A stretch of 64,000 nt of DNA from Entomortierella parvispora E1425 (lineage: Eukaryota > Fungi > Mortierellomycota): assembly GCA_020891255.1 (NCBI GenBank), contig BQFW01000008.1, forward strand, positions 3,100,001 through 3,164,000, given 5' to 3'. A program made the translations under genes and the position numbers. Under the pieces are notes generated by a model, which saw only the letters and a program-made list of their open reading frames with translations, made no database searches and was not told the DNA's origin. Positions 29,946-41,807 of the stretch are shown here, one piece after another. Every line of letters begins with the position of its first letter. Positions within the stretch are counted from its first letter, which is position 1.

Positions 29946-30682
29946 GGTTGATGTGAGAGATGTGAGTGGAGCAAAGAGAACGGAAAAGAGAGAAGAGAAA
30001 GGAAGGAGAACAATGGACCATGCGAGTGCATTGAGCGGCACAGGGGGAATGATACGGCGGTGGCTTGTGCTGTTTATCGAGGTCCGCAATTTCTACATTG
30101 GATTTGTGCGTGGATCAACAAGTGTCGCCCCTTAAATATGTAGGATGGCAGATCGAAGTTCAAACGCGCACCAGTGGGCCTTGGAAGCCCCAATTCCAGG
30201 CTATGATATATTCTCACCAAACTGTTGCAAAGTCATTCCACTTGATAGCCAGCTTCTGCTACTGCTATCATTCTAGTATTTCGAGTTCAATGATAAGTCT
30301 CCGCTTGTCTTTTATGCTATCGAAGGGTTTGAGGTGTGAGTCGTTTGAGTTCGAGGTGAATTGGAGTGTGTTTTCAAGGGAAAGTGTTGGTCGGCTGGTT
30401 CTTGAAACTCGAGTGGCTGTTGGTTCAAGAGAGGCAAGCAGCGCTCTGCAGCACAGCACTGTTGTCATGACAATGACTACGAGTGCCCCTTTGCCACCAA
30501 TTTTGCATCCTCGGACAAATCACGTGTTTTTGGTGCATTGAGGGCAGAAGAGAAAGAATCAAGCCACTGGAAGTATTGTGCTTTGCACCTAAAAAAAAAT
30601 AAACTTGCAGATATCATGATGATAAAATATATATTCAATGAACAGTCACTCCGGTTAACTTAGAAATTTGGTGGGCTAAATG

Positions 30683-30910
30683 CACGTGACAAGACGGGCA
30701 CGTGAACATGGACGCAGGATAAATAAAATATCAGAAAGCGTAGGGGTGCATTTACTGACAAGGAGTTTCTGCGTGTAGTTCGAAAAAGCATGGGTACGTT
30801 CGTATTTGACTGGCATCCGTTTATTTGTAGTATAATTGCGAACTTTTTACGCATTCAGAAAGGGTAAAAAGATGAGAAACAGCTATTCGGACTGCAGTAT
30901 TTAAACTGCA
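30683..30910 (+). promoter_or_regulatory. Putative transposase promoter: two GCACGTGA E-boxes and a TATTTAAA box inside a 6-bp inverted repeat
   Basis: CACGTG at 30683 and 30699. TGCAGT-ATTTAA-ACTGCA at 30893-30910, about 40 nt before the ATG at 30949. Confidence 0.4.
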
Positions 30911-30948
30911 ACGTGCGTGTTGCTTCTCAAACATCACCCCACATCCCA

Positions 30949-31963
30949 ATGACCTTTTCAGACGATATTCGCTGGTGCGCCATTAAGCTCTACAATATAA
31001 TGGGCCTGCCCAGGTCTGCTGTGGCAGTGTTGCTAGGCATTTCGCAACACACGATCACGAAATGGTATCGTAAGTCAGCGTTGTTGAGTCGCGTCGCCTT
31101 CGCGTTTTTTTTTCTTATTCTTTTTTTTTTTTTTTTTTGGGAAATGGACAGGACATTTCAACAACACAGGGAACGTTCACATTGAACATACGCGCAAAAG
31201 CTCTTCTCGATGGCCACCAGATGTGTTGACTTTCGTCGAGTCATATACCAAAAACCATCCTTGCTTCTTCCTTGAGGAGCTGCAAGAGGAACTTTGGCGT
31301 GAATTTCCAGATCTGCAGAGTACATCCGTCTCCACAATTTGCCGTGCTTTACGAAATGATCTGAATCTCACAAGAAAAAAGTTGCAGAAGCGAGCACGCG
31401 AGTCAAATCCACAGGAAATCGAGTGGTTTCGACAAAACATGAAGGAACTGTACCTCTTTCCAGAGCGGCTTGTGTTTATTGATGAGACGAGCAAGGACGG
31501 ACGAGCGGCTTTGAGATCGTACGCCTATTCCACAGTCAATACGGCAGCTATTGTAAACGTTCCTTTCTCACGGGGGGTTCCTGTCTCTGCACTGGCTGCT
31601 TTTAACTACGGAGGTTTTCTTGCCTGGGAATTCACTACCGGAACATTCACACGGGAATCGTTTCATGATGCATTTGTCGACAAGATTCTACCCCACCTTC
31701 AACCTTACCCTCTACCAGTCATAGACAATGCTCGCATTCATATGTATAGCGAATTCCGGGAAGCAATCGAGGTTGGTTTCTCTCTAACCAAACGCTTCAT
31801 TGAAAAGAATGCAAATCTTGTTTATGCCGAGGCACCGGAAATCGTTCTAGACCTTGCATTCAAGGCATGTGCAAAAACATGGCCTATAACCATCAATTTG
31901 TTTTCGCACTGTGGCTATGACGCCGATGGACTGAAGGAGAGCATTGACTTTATTTACACTTGA
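30949..31963 (+). CDS. Tc1/mariner-IS630 family DDE transposase, 2 exons (30949-31069, 31152-31963), probably inactive
   Basis: N-terminal HTH (AVAVLLGISQHTITKWY), second HTH (FFLEELQEEL...SVSTICRALR..L.LTRKKL), and catalytic LVFIDET (D at 31481) and IDNARIH (D at 31724). The usual LPPYSPxLNP segment is absent before E.GFS. Confidence 0.88.
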
Positions 31964-31979
31964 TCCAGCCATAAACGTG

Positions 31980-32943
31980 TCAATCAGAATCTGCGTGATC
32001 AAGATCTTCCATATTCTCCCGCGGGCGAGGGAGAGCAGCCTGTTGTAGATGGACAAGGCCATTCAAGCCATGCTGTGGGAGGTTAAGAGCCGTCCGTAGG
32101 CTCTCCACATCCACAAGAAGAGAAACTATTGCGTCCCCAAGCTTTAATCGAATCCGTTTGAATTGTGCTCCATCAGCTTCTCGAGTTCGTCGCCGTCTAT
32201 CTTCCTGTGCTATTTGTGAATCTAAGTGCTGTGCTTGAACGAAAGTGGCGGTTGTTGGCATCTCTAGGCTCCTCTGGATCAGGCAATCGAGCATCTTGAG
32301 CAAGTCTCTGTGTAAACAAAAATCTTTGTAATTGGTCCTGGAGGTTGTATCTGTCCATCCTCGACTGCCTGTTGAATCCTCTGAACCGCCGCCGCTTTCC
32401 GTGATGCTGTTGCTCGCTGGATTGTCGATCCTGAGCCACCGCTGTTTCCTGAGGCATGAGTTTCGGGGTAGGTCAAATAAGCGAACAGATGGAAAACAAT
32501 CTGCCCCGGATCTACTCCACGCTTCCGCTCCATGCGCTATGCTCTTTCAATAGCTTCTTCATAGGTGTTCTCCTCCAAGATCTGGAAGAGCTTTGCTGAG
32601 GAGTGTTTGGATGGTTTGACATATGGACTGGCATCAGTTGGCCAGCGCATACCAGGTAGACGAGTCAGAATGGACCCTCGAATGCGCGCACAAATTTGAT
32701 GGTAGGAATCTCTCTTCCATTTGTGCTGCCATGGTGGCGGGTCAGGTAAATCACCGATGATTTTCCGATTGTGAGCAGCAAGAGCGGGTAGCTTCCGTAG
32801 ATTCAATTGAATGATGAGGTTCTCTGGAAGACCATCATCATCTGATTCGATATCACCTGTAGGGGATCGGGAGGATTTTTTTTTTTGTGTGGGGATCGGG
32901 AGGAAGAGTGCCGAGGGAAGGGGTATACAGTAGAGTCGAACAT
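31980..32943 (-). pseudogene. Accessory gene of the element (unknown family), disrupted
   Basis: Reading frame DIESDDDGLPENLIIQL...WQHKWKRDSYHQICARIRGSIL...EEAIERA*RMERKRG... has an in-frame TAG at 32537-32539 and a 1-nt frameshift near 32310-32320. It ends 17 bp from the transposase stop. The 5' exon is uncertain. Confidence 0.6.
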
Positions 32944-33110
32944 CGTTCAGATCACGTGTGTTTGAAGGTTTGGATGCGAGACTAGCCTACAGACGCGTCG
33001 CTCGCTCTTTGCTTTTCCCTGCTCCTCCGCCATTGCCCTTTGCCTTGTCTCTACCGCCTCTCCAATCACCAAAAGAACTCGTCTTGTCTTCATTCCCTAC
33101 CGCCAGCGTC

Positions 33111-36100
33111 ATGGATTACACCGACGCTGATGTCCTGGAAGACATCAATGAGACTCTTACCATCAACATGGAGATTCAGGACATTGACTTTGGACGCGAC
33201 ATCGCGGTATCCACAGAGGTATGACTTTGAATTCCAGTTTGCAATGGCGTTGATGCTGTTGGTATGGTTTCCATACCCTTACTCTTATTTATGCTCTTTC
33301 TTCCGATAGTTTTCTGTTTCATTCATCGATGATGATGAGTTTCTTGCTGAGGCAAACGCACGACTTTTAGCTGAACAGGATGACGAGCTTCAGCTACGCG
33401 TTGACTACATGATACAGGGTGCGGACGATGGACTGCCGCTTAACCAAAATGTCCGACAGACTTTGGATGTTCTCCACCATCGATACGGTCTGGTCGTAAG
33501 TACATGCTCGAGCTCCCTTTCTGCACTTGTTGCATCCGTCATGTCCCGAACATCGCTATCAGCCTTCCGAATTCAGACTCCCGGCGGCCCTGTCACTCTC
33601 CCTCCATCCCGATTGCTGTTGAGAAGGATCTCTCAAGCTGCACAGATCAAAATTGTTGTTGTGTCGACTCGCTGCAAGAAACTTGTGTTCGAGCCTGTTG
33701 GCGAGCCGAAAGCGCTGGTTGTCCTCGCCCACATCGCTGATTCGTTTCAGGGAGTCAATACCTACACCGCGTTGACTTGTTCAGTAACAAGTCCCAATCG
33801 AGATTTCCGTATGCCCTCCGTTCGACTTCCTCCTGTAATACCGACAGCAGAAAGGGCCACATATCGAGAGGCAAAACGATCAACAACTCGCGAGATAATC
33901 GAGTTCAGCGTCTTGGAAGCCGAAGAGAGTTTTCTTTCCGGTTGGTACGTTTTCTGGTTTACCCAAAGCTATGGTAATAATTCTAATATTAACCTTTGGA
34001 CATATTATACATAGTAAAACGACCTTGAAAAAGAGAATCAACGTCGCCGTGAACAAGGTCGTCAGCAAAACAAAAGGAAAGAAAAAAGGTCCTGTGGATA
34101 TCCGTGCCGCCTTGGAGAAGGAATACGTCGACTTCATCGATGCCGAGTGTAAACTCCAGCGGCTACCAAGAGGGCTCATGCAGGACGCCATATCAACTCT
34201 GGAAACATCCCTTGGAGTGGGAAAAGGTCGTATATCAAATAATGACTTTACGCTTCGTATGAGCATGGAACAGACACACACGGCATATCGCAACTTTATG
34301 AAGGAAAACGGCTGCCTGTTTTGGGATCATTCAGTTGAGAATAAGGACAAGAAACTCGAGCTTGAACCTGTCTCTAGTCAGTCCCATGTCCAAGAGATTC
34401 CCTCTCAGGTCAATGATATATCCAAGACCCAAGAAATCAGGATGTGCGATGCTCCTTTGCACAGGATCCTCCGTAAAGACTTTTGTAAGGACAACATAAC
34501 AAGGATCCAGGGAATCCTCGAGGAGAAACAAACGAGTATGTCAGACCACATGGATGAAATCCAAGTGGCAGTTTTGAAGGTGCACATGGAGGTAAGAAAT
34601 ACCTACTGTCGATGAGACAATCTACACATGCTTTTTGCTTCCAGCACTCACTGACATATCATCCACTATATGATAGGTGTTTCGTGGTTTGCTGCACGAG
34701 ACAGCAGAAGAGGTCGACATTTCTGACATTCTTCCTACAGATTTTGAAATCCGCGACGCTCGGATCAAAAATGATCGTATCCTCAAAGTTGCGAAGGGCA
34801 CCACGGTCTTTATCGAAGAGACTATCAAAACCGACTCTGATCTTCACAACCTATTCAATCAGAGTTGTCTAGAGCACCTAGCAGCAAAGCTCAGCCCTAC
34901 TTCATCGAGCTCTGAGCCCCCGCTAAAGAAACCAAGACTCGCTGGCGACGGAGATGCAGAGAGTCAAGGCGGGAGTGGATACGGAAAGCATCCAAAATGG
35001 GACAAGTTGGCTCACTGTATTCAACAGACTATGTATGCAACCGACAACATCAAGTGCCCTCACGGAATGTCTCGAACCAGAAATGAGATGCTCCGTGCTA
35101 TGGCTACCAACATCCACAACATCTGGAACGGATCAATATACAACGATCTGAAGAGAGCAGTCGTCCGCTGTCTTGTCCGAGTCTTTTTGCGACCTCTCAG
35201 TGAGGAGTGGTACCGGCAGTTCAAGAAAAAAAAAGCCAAGGAGAGACGAGAAAGGATCGCTGCTAAGCAAGGCAAGGCGAGAAAACGACAAAAGCGATCC
35301 TGGCAGAGAACTACATCTCTTATCAATCAACTGGATAGTACCATCGGCACCTGCGACAGGCGATGGTCGGGAGCTACTCTCTTTCTCTCTGATCCACAGA
35401 CTGGAGGTTGTCCACGTGTTACACGCGTCCAGACACTGATAGGATTGCTCAATCCGGCAGTTGCACCCCTATTATCGCCCTTTGCAGCTGTAGATGATGA
35501 GTACGAGGATGAGGCCTACATGGATATCGATGAGGATGATGACGATGATGCGGACATTTGGGAAGCAGATGACGCTGATGGCTTTGAAGAAGCAGTAGAG
35601 GCAGAAATGAGTATTGCGACACTGGGCCAGGCCATCGAGTCAACTGAAAAAGGTAACTTTAATGATTATACATATCGCTTCTATAAGAGATTAGAGAAAA
35701 ACATTGACACAGATTTTTTTGTCTATAGCGGCCGCTCGTAAAAAAGAACCCAAGTCAAAATACCTCAAGGGCATCGAGGCTTTAATTTGCAAGCTCATCG
35801 ATATGGCTTCGTTGCCAGACCTTATCAGTGAAGCAGAGATTCGCAACCATTTGTTCTCTGGCCAAAGTTTCAAGGACAACGAAATTCAGGTGGCGGTTCA
35901 CATCGTCAATGCGTTGCGTCCGTTTGCCCCAAAGAAGGATGCCTCTGGATCCATTCCTCATCATGTTCTCGCTACTGGCCCTTTCGCCTATCTGGCAAAT
36001 CATCTCTTGATCGCCATGGGGTTCAGCGAATTTTCCAGACAGCTATCCCCTGTCTCGTCAGCCGGAAAGCTCCTCCCTCTGCCACTGAATTCCACTGGGA

Positions 36101-38380
36101 TAAGTGAATCTCTGTGCGCCTTGGATCCACACCATTTCGATATCTTCGACTCAACCGGCCTACTGGTTTCAGATCAAAAACATGCGCCAGGGAACGCCCC
36201 TACCATTTTCTCGGCGTTCTTCGACATGCAGGTGATCCATGCAACTTGTGCCAAATTTGGTCTGCGCTTCGGAGACAGGTAACAACATGTTTATGACTTT
36301 TTTTTTTTTTTTTTTTTTTTTTTGACTGACGCAGAATCTAACATATTGACCCATTTCAATAGGCTTGTCTTCGTTGACGAGCATACTGTAAGGATTATGG
36401 GGTACGAGGCCCGACCGAACGCTCCACGCAACATGATCAAGGAGAAACGAAAGAAGCTTGGCAAAGGCCGTTCAAGGGAGCCTACGGATGCAGAACAGCG
36501 CCAAATTGTTCTCCATGAATCGAAACTATCCAAGGCGGAAGCCAAAATAAGTGCCGCAGATCATGATGTGCGTATAACGGAGCTCAAAGAGGAGATAAAG
36601 GCACTAAACCGGCAGCTGGGGTTGGAAGAGATCCGGATGAAAAGCGTGAATGCAGATTTGCGACGGCTAAAAACTGAGAAACGCAAAGAGAATGACGTTA
36701 ATCGAAAGGAATGTCTGGGCGAGGAAATCGACACAGCATTCAGAGATCTGCATACGCTACGCTCGAGCGTTCACAGACTTCGGCGGAAAGCGCTTCCTAT
36801 GCGAAACCAGATCAAGGGGTTGCGGCAAAAAAAGTATGACCTTGACAAGTATGTTTCGTCCGAATCAAAGCCAAAGACGGAAAAGGAGTCGAACGGGGAG
36901 CTGAGCGAGTCGGTCACATCCAAATTCTCTTCGACACCCTCTCTCCTTCGCCGGGGATGCTTAGACTCTGTTGAATCAACCAGCATCGACAGTCTCGTCA
37001 AGGATATTGAGACCAACAACGCGGATCAAAGGAACAGAAGGATTGTTTTAGTCCCAGGTGGGACGGATCCAGGCGCCCATGTGTTATTCAACACGGTCCC
37101 GATAACTGAAAACAAACTGATCGAGCTTCGAAATCGTTTCGAGATACTTTCGAACGAGGGGGCAGAATCGGAGCAAGATCCGGAAGAAGGGGTGCAGTCA
37201 ATTGACCAGATACGGTTCCCAGATCCGCACCAGGTCACTGTTAAGCACATACGCCACCATGCAGGCCTTGTGAAGCAATCGCGATTCAGAAAGAAGCTCA
37301 TTGCAGCTAATGCTGAGGTACGCAAGGCACACGCTGATCTGGCGGATAACTCAATCCGGCGAGCAAACTCTTCGCATGCCATTGAGCAGGCCCAAGAAAC
37401 ACGTCGCAACTGTCGCACAACACTCCGATCTTTTGAGAAATCCAGAAGGATGAAGAACCTACGACGCCGTACTGAACTTCAACTGAGGAATACGTATGAC
37501 AAAGTTGCAGCCGCGGAGCGAGACGCATTTAAGAGGGTGGTGAATGGTAAGTCAAGCACTGCTGTCTGTATTGATTTTACTGCAGCAGGTGTGCTCTATT
37601 TACAGTACTCATTCGCATTCGTCTTTCAAACTCGACTCAGTAGACAGTAATTCATTGCAAACCTCAGGAGAGCCGTCCTATCCATCAACCGGATATTGCA
37701 CAGACTGCAGGACACACCACCGTCCAGAGTTTGTCGTCGATCCGAGTGCCCCTCGTGGGCGACGCCTCGTCTTGAAGCATGTGAACCAATGTCCAAGGGC
37801 GAGTCCCATCGTCATGCCATTAATGCTTCACGGTGCCGCAGGTTCCGGAGTGGGTTCACGTCTCAAAGGTCATTCAAAAATGGGAGGGAACAAAATTCCT
37901 GAGAAACACTTGCGCTATACGCCGGTCCTCAAGACCAATGAACACAAAAGCTCCCAGCTTTGCCCCTTTTGCTTTTCGCAGATAAGACTCGTACGGGCAA
38001 GGCGCAACAAGAACGGAGTCATGAGGTTAGTGCGAGTACATGGAGCAATTCAATGTACAAACCCAGACTGCCCTTCCTTCAAGGTTGGATATGCTGATCG
38101 CGGGCGAGACACCAATGCAGCGGTGAACATTGCATTGGCTGGATACGTATGCCTCACCTCTTCCGATCACAAGACCCTGCCGCCATTCAATCCACGGTGC
38201 CCTGCATGGGAACCTTCTTCAAACACCAGATCCATCTCGACTGGAACCTCAACCTTTCCTCTTGCACCGCAGGTCGATGCCAAGATTTTGGAATTGGGCA
38301 TTCGCTCAACATATGTAAGTACTCTCAGGTCAAATTTGCTCATTCTCCTGTCAATTCTCATTGAGCTCCATATTAACTAA
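33111..38380 (+). CDS. Giant Fanzor1/TnpB-like RNA-guided endonuclease, ~1,580 aa, 7 exons (33111-33218, 33310-33944, 34015-34591, 34677-35652, 35729-36278, 36363-37546, 37668-38380)
   Basis: RuvC-I GTDPG (D at 37066), shifted RuvC-II Glu in TNEHKSSQLCPFC (E at 37940), zinc finger CPFC...CTNPDC, and RuvC-III RDTNAAVNI (D at 38108). Six canonical GT-AG introns join in phase into 4,743 nt with no internal stop. Confidence 0.88.
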
Positions 38381-38573
38381 ATTTTCTTGGGTGATTTCCT
38401 TTTGAAAGTCACAATAAGACAGTCCTCCGTTTCTTCTCTTGCTTGTCGCGATCAGCTGGCTCTTCCTTCCATTCCTTCACCCTCATCCCTCTCATTCGAC
38501 CTGCATTGGACGGCGCGGAGTGCTTTGGACTCGGACAATCACATACACTACTTGCACTCTGAACAGCACAGTC

Positions 38574-41500
38574 ATGTGGAAAGTCTCGGCTATCAACAGC
38601 CGCTCTTGTGCTGCACCCAGTCGTCTCTGCCCACGTCTTTTGGTCTCGACTTCTTCTCACGGCCGTGTGCTTTTGACCAGTGGTCGCAGGACATTCCAGA
38701 CCGGAACCAGGAGGAACTTGGACTCTGGAAACCCTATCGGAGGGAATGGTGGATCGAGCAGCGGCAGGGTACCTCTTGTCGGCGACCGCATCACCCTCGA
38801 TCCAAAGACAAAGCAGAGGATGGAGCTTAGAAAGGACATCAGTGGTGGCAAGATTGGCAACAGCAACGCGACTGGATCAAATGCTGGAAGCAACAAATGG
38901 GCGACACCACCAGGTCAAGCAGCTAGGACTCAGAACAGTCAGTACCGTCGCGCCTTTGAAGAGTCGCGGGACAACCAGTATGGATACAGCTCGGGATCGC
39001 GTGGTCAGAGCAACGCAGGCAAGAATCAACAGCAGTCAGGCGAAGGTGCTCGAAGACCGGGACGCTATGTTGACCAACGCAACAACAATGCTTCCGCGGG
39101 ATCCCGTGGTCAACAACAACAACAACCACGATCAAACGCCCCATCCTCCTTTGCTACGTCTGCTTCTTGGGGATTCTCTGCACCAAAGCCAAAAGCACAA
39201 CAGGCACCTCCTCAGGCGCCGCCTTCGTCTTTTGCTACTTCAGCATCGCGGGGATTCTCTGCTCCAGCACCAAAGCCCAAGCCAGCTGCACAAGGTTCCG
39301 CGCCTGCCCAAAAACCAGCTTCAGCACCCACCACGACCTCGCCTCAAAAAGCAGTATCTGATATCGGCAAGGAGGCTGCTGCTCCCGCAACAAAGACTCC
39401 AGCTCCCGTAACAGCGAAAACAGCTCCTGCTACTTCTTCGGCAGGTCCTCCTGCAACTAAGCCCGCTACTACGTTTACAAAGTCATCTCGGACAGCCAAG
39501 GAGAACGCCAGGATTGAGGTAGCCAGGAGATCTCAGAATCGCAGACAAAAACAGAAAGCTGCCAAGGATGTCTTTATTCCTGAAGCCGTCAGTGTATCCA
39601 ACCTCGCGGGACTCTTGGGAGCAAGGATTGGGCACTTTGAAAAGACGATGAAGGCTCTGGGAATGGAGATTACTCGTCACGATCACAGTAAGTTGTTGTT
39701 GCAGCGAGATATCATTTCCTTTCCCTTTGAAACGAATGATAGCTAATGCGCCCTGGTCCGTTACTATGAATAGTCCTTACCTCGGAAGACGCTTCGTTGT
39801 TGGCACTGGAATACAATGTCAATCCCATCCTCGCCAACACAGAGGCACTCTTTGATCTCACCCCTCAGTAAGTGTGGGGAGTTTTCCGATGGTCGGATCC
39901 CATGCCGCCAAAAAAGGAAATTTTACTCTTTGTGCATGGCCCTAACCCAATTTCTGTTGTTTTAGACCTGAGCCAGAGGACATGTCTATCTACCCACTGC
40001 GACCTCCAGTTGTAACAATCATGGGCCACGTCGATCACGGAAAGACGACTTTGTTGGATTCCTTGCGAAAGACCTCGGTTGCAGCAGGAGAGGCAGGCGG
40101 TATTACCCAACACATTGGTGCGTTCTCGGTCCTTTTACCCTCTAAGCAACGCATCACTTTCTTGGACACTCCTGGACACGCGGCCTTCTCAGCCATGCGC
40201 GCCCGTGGAGCCCAGACGACAGATATCGTAGTCTTGGTTGTGGCTGCCGAGGACGGTGTCATGCCCCAGACTGCAGAGGCGATCAAGCACGCCGAGGAAG
40301 CAGGTGTGCCAATTATTGTGGCTATCAACAAATGCGACAAGTATGGAGCGGAGCCTGACAAGGCCAAGCAGGCTCTCCTCAAGTATGGTGTGACAGTAGA
40401 GGACCTGGGAGGCGAGACTCAGTGCATCGAAGTCTCTGGACTTACAGGCAAGAACCTGGACAAACTGGAGGAGGCCATTTTGACCTTGGCTGAAGTCCTG
40501 GATCTTAGGGCCGAGACATCTATCCGCGGGGAGGGACACATCATTGAATCGCAGGTCGAGAAGGGCCGTGGAAATGTTGCTACTGTCCTGGTCAAGCGCG
40601 GAACGCTCAAGGTCGGAGACACGATCGTGGCTGGCAGTGCCTGGTGCAAGGTGAAGGCGCTTGTCAATGATACTGGCAAGAACGTGAAAGATGCACCACC
40701 CGGCACTCCTGTCAAAGTCATGGGCTGGAAGGATCTCCCAATGGCCGGTGACGAGATGTTGGGCGCCGAATCAGAGGAGCAGGCCAAGCTTGTGATGACT
40801 AACCGCGCTTTGAAGAAGGAACGCAAGGAGCAGTTGAAGACTCTGGTCGCGATTAACGAGAAACGCCGCATCACCGCGGAAGAGGAGGACGAGGAAAAGA
40901 TGGCGTTGAAGGAGTACAAGCGCAAGGCCTGGCTGTTCCATCAAGGAGTCATTGATACTTACCCCGAGCCGATTCAGGTCAAGAAGCAACTCTCTGTGGC
41001 GGCCATGCAGGCCAAGGAGGAAGAGGCGAGTGAGGTGAAGAACATGAGGATGGTGGTGAAGGGAGATGTCAGTGGAACAGTCGAGGCCGTGTGCGACGCA
41101 CTCTCGGGTTTGCCTGCCAACCAAGTCAAGGTCAGCGTGATCCAGAGCGGTGTTGGCAACATTACAGAGAGCGACATTCAGTTTGCTGCAAGTTGTAACG
41201 GTAAGAGCACCCCCAAACAACAGTGGGAGAAAAGCTCTTTTTTTGCTTGTGATACCTTTTGTTTTCATGGGAACAAGAAAGGAATGCTAGAAAAGGAAGA
41301 GTCGGAGACTGACCTGTTTTTTTTGTTTGCTCTTTTGTTCTTTTAGCTATGGTCCTGGGATTCAATGTCAAGGCAGACAAAAAGCTGATGCAAACCGCTC
41401 GACAGATGGGCGTCGGCTTGAAGTCGTACAATGTCATTTACAAGTTGTTGGACGATGTCAAAGTTGAAATGGCGACACTTTTGCCCAAGGATATCGAGAT

Positions 41501-41807
41501 CCAGGTCGTTGGTGAGGCCAAGGTTGCCCAGGTCTTCCCCATCAAGATGAAGGGTGGTCAGACACAAAACGTTGCTGGTTGTCGTATTGTCAATGGTGGT
41601 GTGACCCGCAAGGAAGACGTCCGAATCGTGCGTGATGGCGAAGTGATCTGGGATGGCCGACTTTCCACACTGAAGCGTATCAAAGAAGACATCCAGGAGG
41701 CCAAGAAGGGCACGGAGTGCGGTATGGAGTTTGAAGGATTCCAGGACTTTAAGGAAGGTGATGTTATTCAGAGCATCAAGAAGATTGAAGTCCTGCGAAA
41801 GCTATAG
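38574..41807 (+). CDS. IFM1: Mitochondrial translation initiation factor IF-2 (4 exons)
   Basis: Arg/Ser-rich presequence, RPPVVTIMGHVDHGKTTLLD, GGITQHIGAF, FLDTPGHAAF, AINKCD, and C-terminal GTECGM. GT-AG introns follow 39687, ~39867 and ~41200. Confidence 0.95.

Follow-up and report, generated by a model that had tools for sequence, protein, structure and literature searches.

A giant Fanzor1-family nuclease gene, probable cargo of a Tc1/IS630-type transposon, in Entomortierella parvispora

What does an unusually long, intron-split gene in the fungus Entomortierella parvispora E1425 (Mortierellomycota) encode, and does it belong to the host or to a mobile element? The question is raised by a 64,000-nt stretch of contig BQFW01000008.1 (assembly GCA_020891255.1, positions 3,100,001 to 3,164,000 of the forward strand; hereafter the window, whose numbering is used throughout), in which a preliminary description made from the sequence alone had joined open reading frames (ORFs) from 33111 onwards into a giant RNA-guided nuclease of the Fanzor/TnpB kind. 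We consider it probable, at roughly 80%, that this gene, EMPS_06637, codes for a Fanzor1-family RuvC nuclease with a lineage-specific N-terminal extension and is cargo of a Tc1/IS630-type cut-and-paste transposon.

All motifs quoted in the preliminary description could be located in the protein, in the predicted order: GTDPG at residues 1182–1186 (D1184 encoded at 37066–37068), LMLHG at 1404, CPFC at 1451 and CTNPDC at 1482 in the zinc finger, and RDTNAAVNI at 1499 (D1500 at 38108–38110). The rearranged active site proposed there is likewise present: G1408 of LMLHG occupies the canonical RuvC-II position, and the glutamate, E1444 (37940–37942) in the NEHKSS at 1443, lies 36 residues further on and aligns to the catalytic E541 of SpuFz1. 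In the Fanzor lineage, the RuvC-II Glu is replaced by Gly or Pro, with a conserved Glu tens of residues downstream, and RuvC-I contains DPG (PMC10530073, PMC10711439). The Fanzor/TnpB superfamily motif, D-X(125-275)-[TS][TS]-X-X-C4 finger-X(5-50)-RD (Bao and Jurka 2013, PMC3627910), reads here as D1184, 262 residues, S1447 S1448 Q L, C1451-x2-C1454...C1482-x4-C1487, 11 residues and R1499 D1500. In the family alignment the RuvC-I motif is D-[PY]-G, with D1184 at least 90% conserved among 43 relatives, and neither R1499-D1500 nor the zinc-finger cysteines vary. Eight family members, combined into a profile from RuvC-I through RuvC-III, had SpuFz1 as the top match among PDB sequences (E 0.0046), aligning E1444 and D1500 with chain residues 935 and 1000 or, minus the 394-residue MBP offset, E541 and D606, which with D383 are the metal ligands of SpuFz1 (PMC10432273); D1184, in the DPG motif, is presumed to be the RuvC-I aspartate. 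SpuFz1 was also the best PDB match in a single-sequence search (E 0.23), and the nearest clusters in an atlas search were eukaryotic and giant-virus TNB proteins (score 0.98). A broader profile, spanning the entire C-terminal module, had been tried and set aside for the narrower one: its coiled coil dominated and it matched only coiled-coil PDB chains.

The structural comparison suggested in the preliminary description was carried out with an AlphaFold2 model of residues 765–1570 (mean predicted local distance difference test score, pLDDT, 73). The seven top matches of this model in a Foldseek search of the PDB are all Fanzor1 structures (SpuFz, E 1.7e-5; PpFz, 5.2e-5; GtFz, 2.5e-3; probability 1.0 each), followed by Cas12 variants at E 0.016 or worse, and residues 107–765 of the model align with SpuFz1 chain residues 48–633. 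Residues ~870–1530 hence form a Fanzor1 core, made up of WED/REC, a long hairpin, a split RuvC with the rearranged Glu and a zinc-finger TNB. The model positions the hairpin, 110 helical residues at 1006–1114, where Fanzor1 proteins have their paired REC2 helices, this pair of long helices being a Fanzor1 fold feature (PMC10711439). A TDG motif in the WED domain is characteristic of Fanzor1 without defining it (PMC10711439); no TDG or T[DE]G string occurs anywhere in the protein, the WED region of which is very divergent. The Fanzor1 type named in the preliminary description is thus supported by the Bao–Jurka motif, the profile match to SpuFz1 and the fold match to Fanzor1 structures, and so is the unusual size: 1,570 residues, about 2.5 times the mean Fanzor length of 620 (PMC10530073). 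A family-specific Cys/His motif, G-x-C-x2-C-x2-3-H-H...H-x3-C-P (residues 1363–1394; 37697–37792), follows the RuvC-I helices and precedes the RuvC-II strand; kept in the relatives P0061, P0027, P0030 and P0038 and missing in P0017, P0032 and P0035, it may be an extra zinc-binding insertion.

The gene structure was derived from a three-frame translation of 33000–38500 and from contigs of four public runs aligned to 32900–38600, the RNA evidence consisting of assembled contigs of RNA runs. Translation reproduced the seven forward-strand ORF pieces, which removal of the six predicted GT-AG introns joins into one open frame of 4,743 nt (33111–38380). Two spliced contigs of run X2, which derive from a near-identical copy (see below), join exons 1–4 across 33219–33309, 33945–34014 and 34592–34676, and exons 4–8 across 35653–35728, 36279–36362 and 37547–37640 and then to 38409–38417; the 54-nt gap between them, within exon 4, is spanned by the open frame only. 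The first five introns are exactly as predicted, but the sixth (37547–37640) has its acceptor 27 nt upstream of the predicted 37667, which adds nine residues in frame, and a seventh (38315–38408, 94 nt) had been overlooked: the contig passes from 38314 to TCACAATAA (38409–38417), so that the protein ends in ...STYSQ with its stop codon at 38415–38417. The donor and acceptor of this seventh intron are conserved in two further loci, L005 and L006, and in a non-coding derivative of the element described below. With these corrections the ~1,580 residues first estimated become 1,570, encoded by eight exons and a 4,713-nt coding sequence with canonical splice sites throughout and no stops or frameshifts across the seven introns.

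Exon 1 (33111–33218) encodes residues 1–36 and, together with exon 2 (33310–33944), an alpha/beta domain (residues 35–195, about 33215–33786); exon 3 (34015–34591) covers a helical part of the N-terminal extension, and exon 4 (34677–35652) its conserved blocks, a run of basic residues (KKKKAKERRERIAAKQGKARKRQKR, starting at 623) and an acidic segment (725–731). The SpuFz1-alignable WED/REC region begins in exon 5 (35729–36278), at about residue 870; exon 6 (36363–37546) contains the helical hairpin (36532–36858) and the RuvC-I GTDPG, exon 7 (37641–38314) LMLHG, E1444, the zinc finger (37961–38071) and the RuvC-III D1500, and exon 8 (38409–38417) only Ser-Gln-stop. The product is identical to P0060, GenBank GJJ74279.1, "hypothetical protein EMPS_06637" of the same assembly and contig, and the spliced model is therefore already in the public annotation of the genome, as a hypothetical protein. 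The segment 23111–48417 of the window corresponds at 100% identity to the locus compared with others below (L002). At 32985–32991, ahead of exon 1, contigs of all four runs, the spliced RNA contig included, diverge leftward from the window into GACACGTAATGACCCC..., after a CCTACAG that resembles a splice acceptor; neither this sequence nor the unmatched 5′ portion of the RNA contigs (GACACGTAATGACC...) occurs in the window or at any compared locus, and either may stem from another copy or from an upstream leader exon.

What accounts for the size is the extension, the first ~770–870 residues, which is conserved across four genera of Mortierellomycota. An exhaustive HMMER search with exon 6 returned 50 proteins, those with a named source all from this group (Entomortierella, Mortierella sp. 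AM989 and GBA35, Gryganskiella and Modicella) and the remainder from metagenomes or run assemblies. P0055 and P0061 are colinear with EMPS_06637 over its whole length, P0038 (Mortierella sp., 1,823 residues) from residue ~36–40 to ~1527, and P0030 (Gryganskiella, 1,731 residues) over two stretches, 39–963 and 1139–1528. Family identity across genera is 24–30%, with the catalytic residues retained, and the extension is as conserved (27–29% identity to other genera) as the RuvC-I region (26–28%), which indicates an old fusion rather than an annotation artefact. The model of the N-terminal part (mean pLDDT 56) is confident at 35–195 (alpha/beta, pLDDT 70–89) and 235–365 (helical); as a whole it gave no significant fold match in the PDB, and an N-terminal profile found nothing in the PDB and, in a word-indexed protein search, two close relatives only. 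Region 192–700 matches uncharacterised AlphaFold DB proteins (E down to 2.6e-7). Residues 35–195 draw OTU structures, which account for some 20 of the 50 best Foldseek matches in the PDB (every one insignificant, E >0.1), OTU clusters of AlphaFold DB at probability 0.98–0.99, and 38 of 100 atlas feature matches. However, there is no Pfam OTU match (PF02338) in this segment, the position of the OTU catalytic Cys is occupied in the family alignment by E, D, L, N or K, never by Cys, and no Cys or His is conserved in it across the family. Residues 35–195 are, at best, a dead OTU-like fold, and the extension may serve in nuclear import, by its basic stretches, or in the binding of partners or chromatin, by this catalytically dead domain.

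An extension amounting to half of the protein and conserved to the same degree as RuvC-I would also be expected if the protein were a nuclease-inactive, RNA-guided binder or regulator of the TldR type, or if its main activity lay in the extension and the RuvC part were a targeting scaffold. Nevertheless, conservation across the family extends to all three catalytic residues and to the zinc finger, and the OTU-like domain lacks its catalytic Cys in every member, so that no alternative enzyme activity is evident; we judge this account improbable.

Comparison with paralogous loci placed the gene, as cargo, on the right-hand side of an element of 7,844 bp, 30574–38417. Similarity to locus L006 begins exactly at 30574 and stops at 38417–38420, that to L004 runs from 30572 to 38411, and the flanks are unrelated at every locus compared. 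The left end (TATTGTGCTTTGCACC, 30574–30589, + strand), where similarity to L004, L006 and a short derivative at L001 begins, and the right end read TATTGTG... and ...CACAATA(A), which are inverted complements with TA outermost on both sides; TA is found at both ends of every copy and is the presumptive target-site duplication. Six independent right ends (window, L001, L003, L005, L006 and the L001 derivative) share the sequence ...CACAATAA, beyond which they diverge. No convincing terminal inverted repeats had come out of a search near the coordinates of the preliminary description, and the ends are visible only through the paralogous loci. The last nine bases of the Fanzor coding sequence are the right terminal repeat of the transposon, exon 8 serving as both, and the seventh intron lies within the right subterminal region. 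The presumptive TA duplication corresponds to the first two bases of the stop codon, and the base following TA is A in all six insertions, the non-coding derivative among them; this A may come from the element or reflect a target preference.

Within the element, a Tc1/IS630-like transposase gene (30949–31963, + strand), apparently with a short intron after the helix-turn-helix exon, matches Pfam HTH_23 (E 4.6e-8) and DDE_3 (E 8.7e-9, profile positions 1–102 of 146). In the window copy, 60 nt are missing in frame between 31768 and 31769, and with them a "PPYSPQLNPIE" motif; L004 and L006 have 60 extra bases there, coding for ...SRGAFLVFLPPYSPQLNPIE, and the transposase ORF of L004 is intact with the full DDE motif set, including FLPPYSPQLNPIE. 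Lacking the third catalytic motif, the window copy is unable to move by itself, and an intact transposase of the L004 type could mobilise it in trans. The HTH_23 plus DDE_3 transposase, the inverted termini and the TA at both ends mark the carrier of the gene as a canonical eukaryotic transposon rather than an IS607 element. Minus-strand ORF fragments (31980–33112) lie between the transposase and Fanzor genes; one ORF of 190 residues, without Pfam match, begins in L004 (2359–2931) at a CATG that includes the Fanzor ATG, and its counterpart in the window (32537–33112, − strand) is interrupted. The neighbours, a ribosomal protein L13 gene upstream and a homologue of mitochondrial translation initiation factor IF-2 downstream (approximately 38574–41800; L002 15464–18697), indicate that the element sits in an ordinary housekeeping neighbourhood.

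At least four copies, ~97–98% identical and with sharp common ends, occur at unrelated loci, and the element has been recently active. They differ in what is intact: the window copy has both ends and an intact Fanzor gene with a dead transposase; EMPS_06447 (L003) has lost the left end and the transposase and keeps the Fanzor gene intact; EMPS_07350 (L004) has an intact left end and transposase ORF, a damaged right tip and a 4-nt frameshift in the Fanzor gene; and EMPS_10907 (L001) is truncated at 32941, without a transposase and with two frameshifts in the Fanzor gene. Synonymous to nonsynonymous codon changes between copies number 24:34, 24:53 and 24:35, and introns diverge as much as exons or more, which points to mild purifying selection on the Fanzor copies. 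Four kilobases upstream of the truncated EMPS_10907 lies a derivative of ~940 nt (L001 4859–5798, − strand) resembling a miniature inverted-repeat transposable element (MITE), in which 80 nt of the left end are joined to 168 nt of the right end and the last Fanzor intron is kept. L006 represents a subfamily with only 44% Fanzor protein identity to the window copy. The left module (left end, transposase and minus-strand ORFs) is 87–92% identical between window 30574–32854, L005 777–3740 and L006 1330–3691, whereas the Fanzor DNA of the 44%-identical subfamilies aligns in parts only, at 66–72%; this contrast suggests module exchange or unequal rates of change within the element family.

Could the window copy instead be a domesticated host gene, a Fanzor co-opted for a cellular function and no longer in a mobile element? 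Its 4.7-kb frame is intact beside a transposase without its third catalytic motif and an interrupted minus-strand ORF, and the large architecture is old, being present in four genera. Nevertheless, the multiple near-identical copies with common ends at unrelated loci, the MITE-like derivative and the intact transposase ORF of another copy point to a mobile element, and two frameshifted copies fit transposon turnover rather than an essential single-copy gene, which makes domestication very unlikely. That the window copy is a decaying transposon whose open frame reflects only youth, its protein not made or inactive, would agree with RNA contigs that match a paralogue, two frameshifted sister copies and a ratio of nonsynonymous to synonymous substitution rates (dN/dS) moderately below 1, yet has hardly any chance in view of 4,713 nt free of stops and frameshifts over seven canonically spliced introns and of catalytic residues kept at 24–30% identity across genera, which place the lineage under selection.

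If EMPS_06637 is indeed a transposon-borne Fanzor1 nuclease, its action may be sketched by analogy. As for Fanzor1 and TnpB, an omega RNA (also called reRNA) would be transcribed across the right end, with terminal inverted repeat and TA, and bound by the Fanzor protein; Fanzor1 reRNAs cover the terminal inverted repeat and the target-site duplication and extend about 15 nt beyond (Yoon et al., PMC10711439). Here such an RNA would share sequence with the last intron and with the 9-nt exon 8, and a guide of ~15 nt would read into the flanking DNA. Matching DNA flanked by a target-adjacent motif would be cut by the single RuvC site of D1184, E1444 and D1500, and, by analogy with SpuFz1, PpFz1 and TnpB, cleavage might help to maintain the element or let it spread once excised. 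As a prediction, the "probably active" of the preliminary description fits the intact frame, the conserved triad, the expression and the recent copying.

Several results weigh against the reading of the gene as a transposon-borne Fanzor1 nuclease. On the protein side, the Pfam Cas12f1-like_TNB match stays under threshold both for the exons and for full-length relatives (E 0.0075–0.017), and TM-scores to SpuFz1 are low (0.23–0.30), because of insertions. As to the guide RNA, the right end has no exceptional folding energy (z −0.6 to +0.8) and essentially no covariation signal, and no omega RNA was detected there; RNA folding of both element ends gave no signal. The inverted termini match over a short length, 7 bases exactly or 11 of 12 with one indel, and aligned over 70 nt they do not rise above shuffled controls. 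Frameshifts affect two of the four near-identical Fanzor copies, and the rough dN/dS between copies, 0.45–0.7, indicates only mild constraint. Finally, the spliced X2 contigs differ from the window by 1–3% and carry a 6-nt insertion at 35459 that is found in three sister copies and not in the window copy, so that the RNA evidence comes from a paralogue: transcription and splicing are demonstrated for at least one near-identical copy (~97%), not for the window copy itself.

Known systems place the gene more closely. Relative to the solved Fanzor1 structures, SpuFz1 (8GKH, 9CEU–9CEZ), PpFz1 (9CF0, 9CF1) and GtFz1 (9CER), with which it shares only 11–16% sequence identity, EMPS_06637 is far larger (1,570 residues, against about 640 in SpuFz1 and about 850 in PpFz1): it adds the 770–870-residue extension, which has no sequence match to any solved chain, a much longer hairpin (about 110 residues) and the Cys/His motif at 1363–1394. 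Fanzor1 genes carried by Mariner/Tc1 elements (Bao and Jurka 2013, PMC3627910; Jiang et al. 2023, PMC10530073) are alike in combining a Tc1/mariner transposase and a Fanzor1 gene in one element, in TA at both ends, and in non-autonomous and chimeric derivatives. They differ in that here the stop codon falls within the right terminal repeat and the last intron is subterminal, the Fanzor is more than twice as long, and the left module is common (87–92%) to subfamilies only 44% identical in Fanzor protein. Unlike TnpB of IS200/IS605 and IS607 and Cas12 (CasPhi/Cas12j), EMPS_06637 is eukaryotic and spliced, with the Glu rearranged, and lies in a DDE transposon rather than in a TnpA element, without a CRISPR array; and unlike OTU deubiquitinases (PF02338), whose structures its alpha/beta domain draws, it lacks the catalytic Cys. 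A literature search for Fanzor together with Mortierella found nothing; among the rows listed in a table of PMC10432273 there is one Mortierella Fanzor, of 677 residues, and EMPS_06637 is not among these rows. Neither the rearranged active site nor the carriage of Fanzor1 by Tc1/mariner elements is new; new relative to the cited literature are the size, the conserved extension and a gene end built into the transposon end.

The giant Mortierellomycota Fanzors may, tentatively, be a distinct Fanzor1 subclass in which the ~800-residue extension, a dead OTU-like domain with helical modules, adds a function missing from compact Fanzors; the enzyme would be active in an element that is still mobile, and its omega RNA would run through the last intron and right repeat. 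We regard this as possible rather than likely. If true, the extension might link the RNA-guided nuclease to the Tc1-type transposase of the element itself, or to the ubiquitin or chromatin machinery.

Fanzors are, to our knowledge, the only known eukaryotic RNA-guided DNA nucleases, those characterised being compact, and EMPS_06637 retains a complete Fanzor1 catalytic core while a conserved extension doubles its size. Its value is moderate for the biology and evolution of Fanzors and, given the large size, low for genome editing in practice. Carried in a culturable fungus by a young, multi-copy Tc1-like transposon whose copies differ in which part is intact, the family is a natural system for asking how Fanzors benefit cut-and-paste transposons, what added domains contribute, and how a guide RNA can share its DNA with coding exon, intron and terminal repeat.

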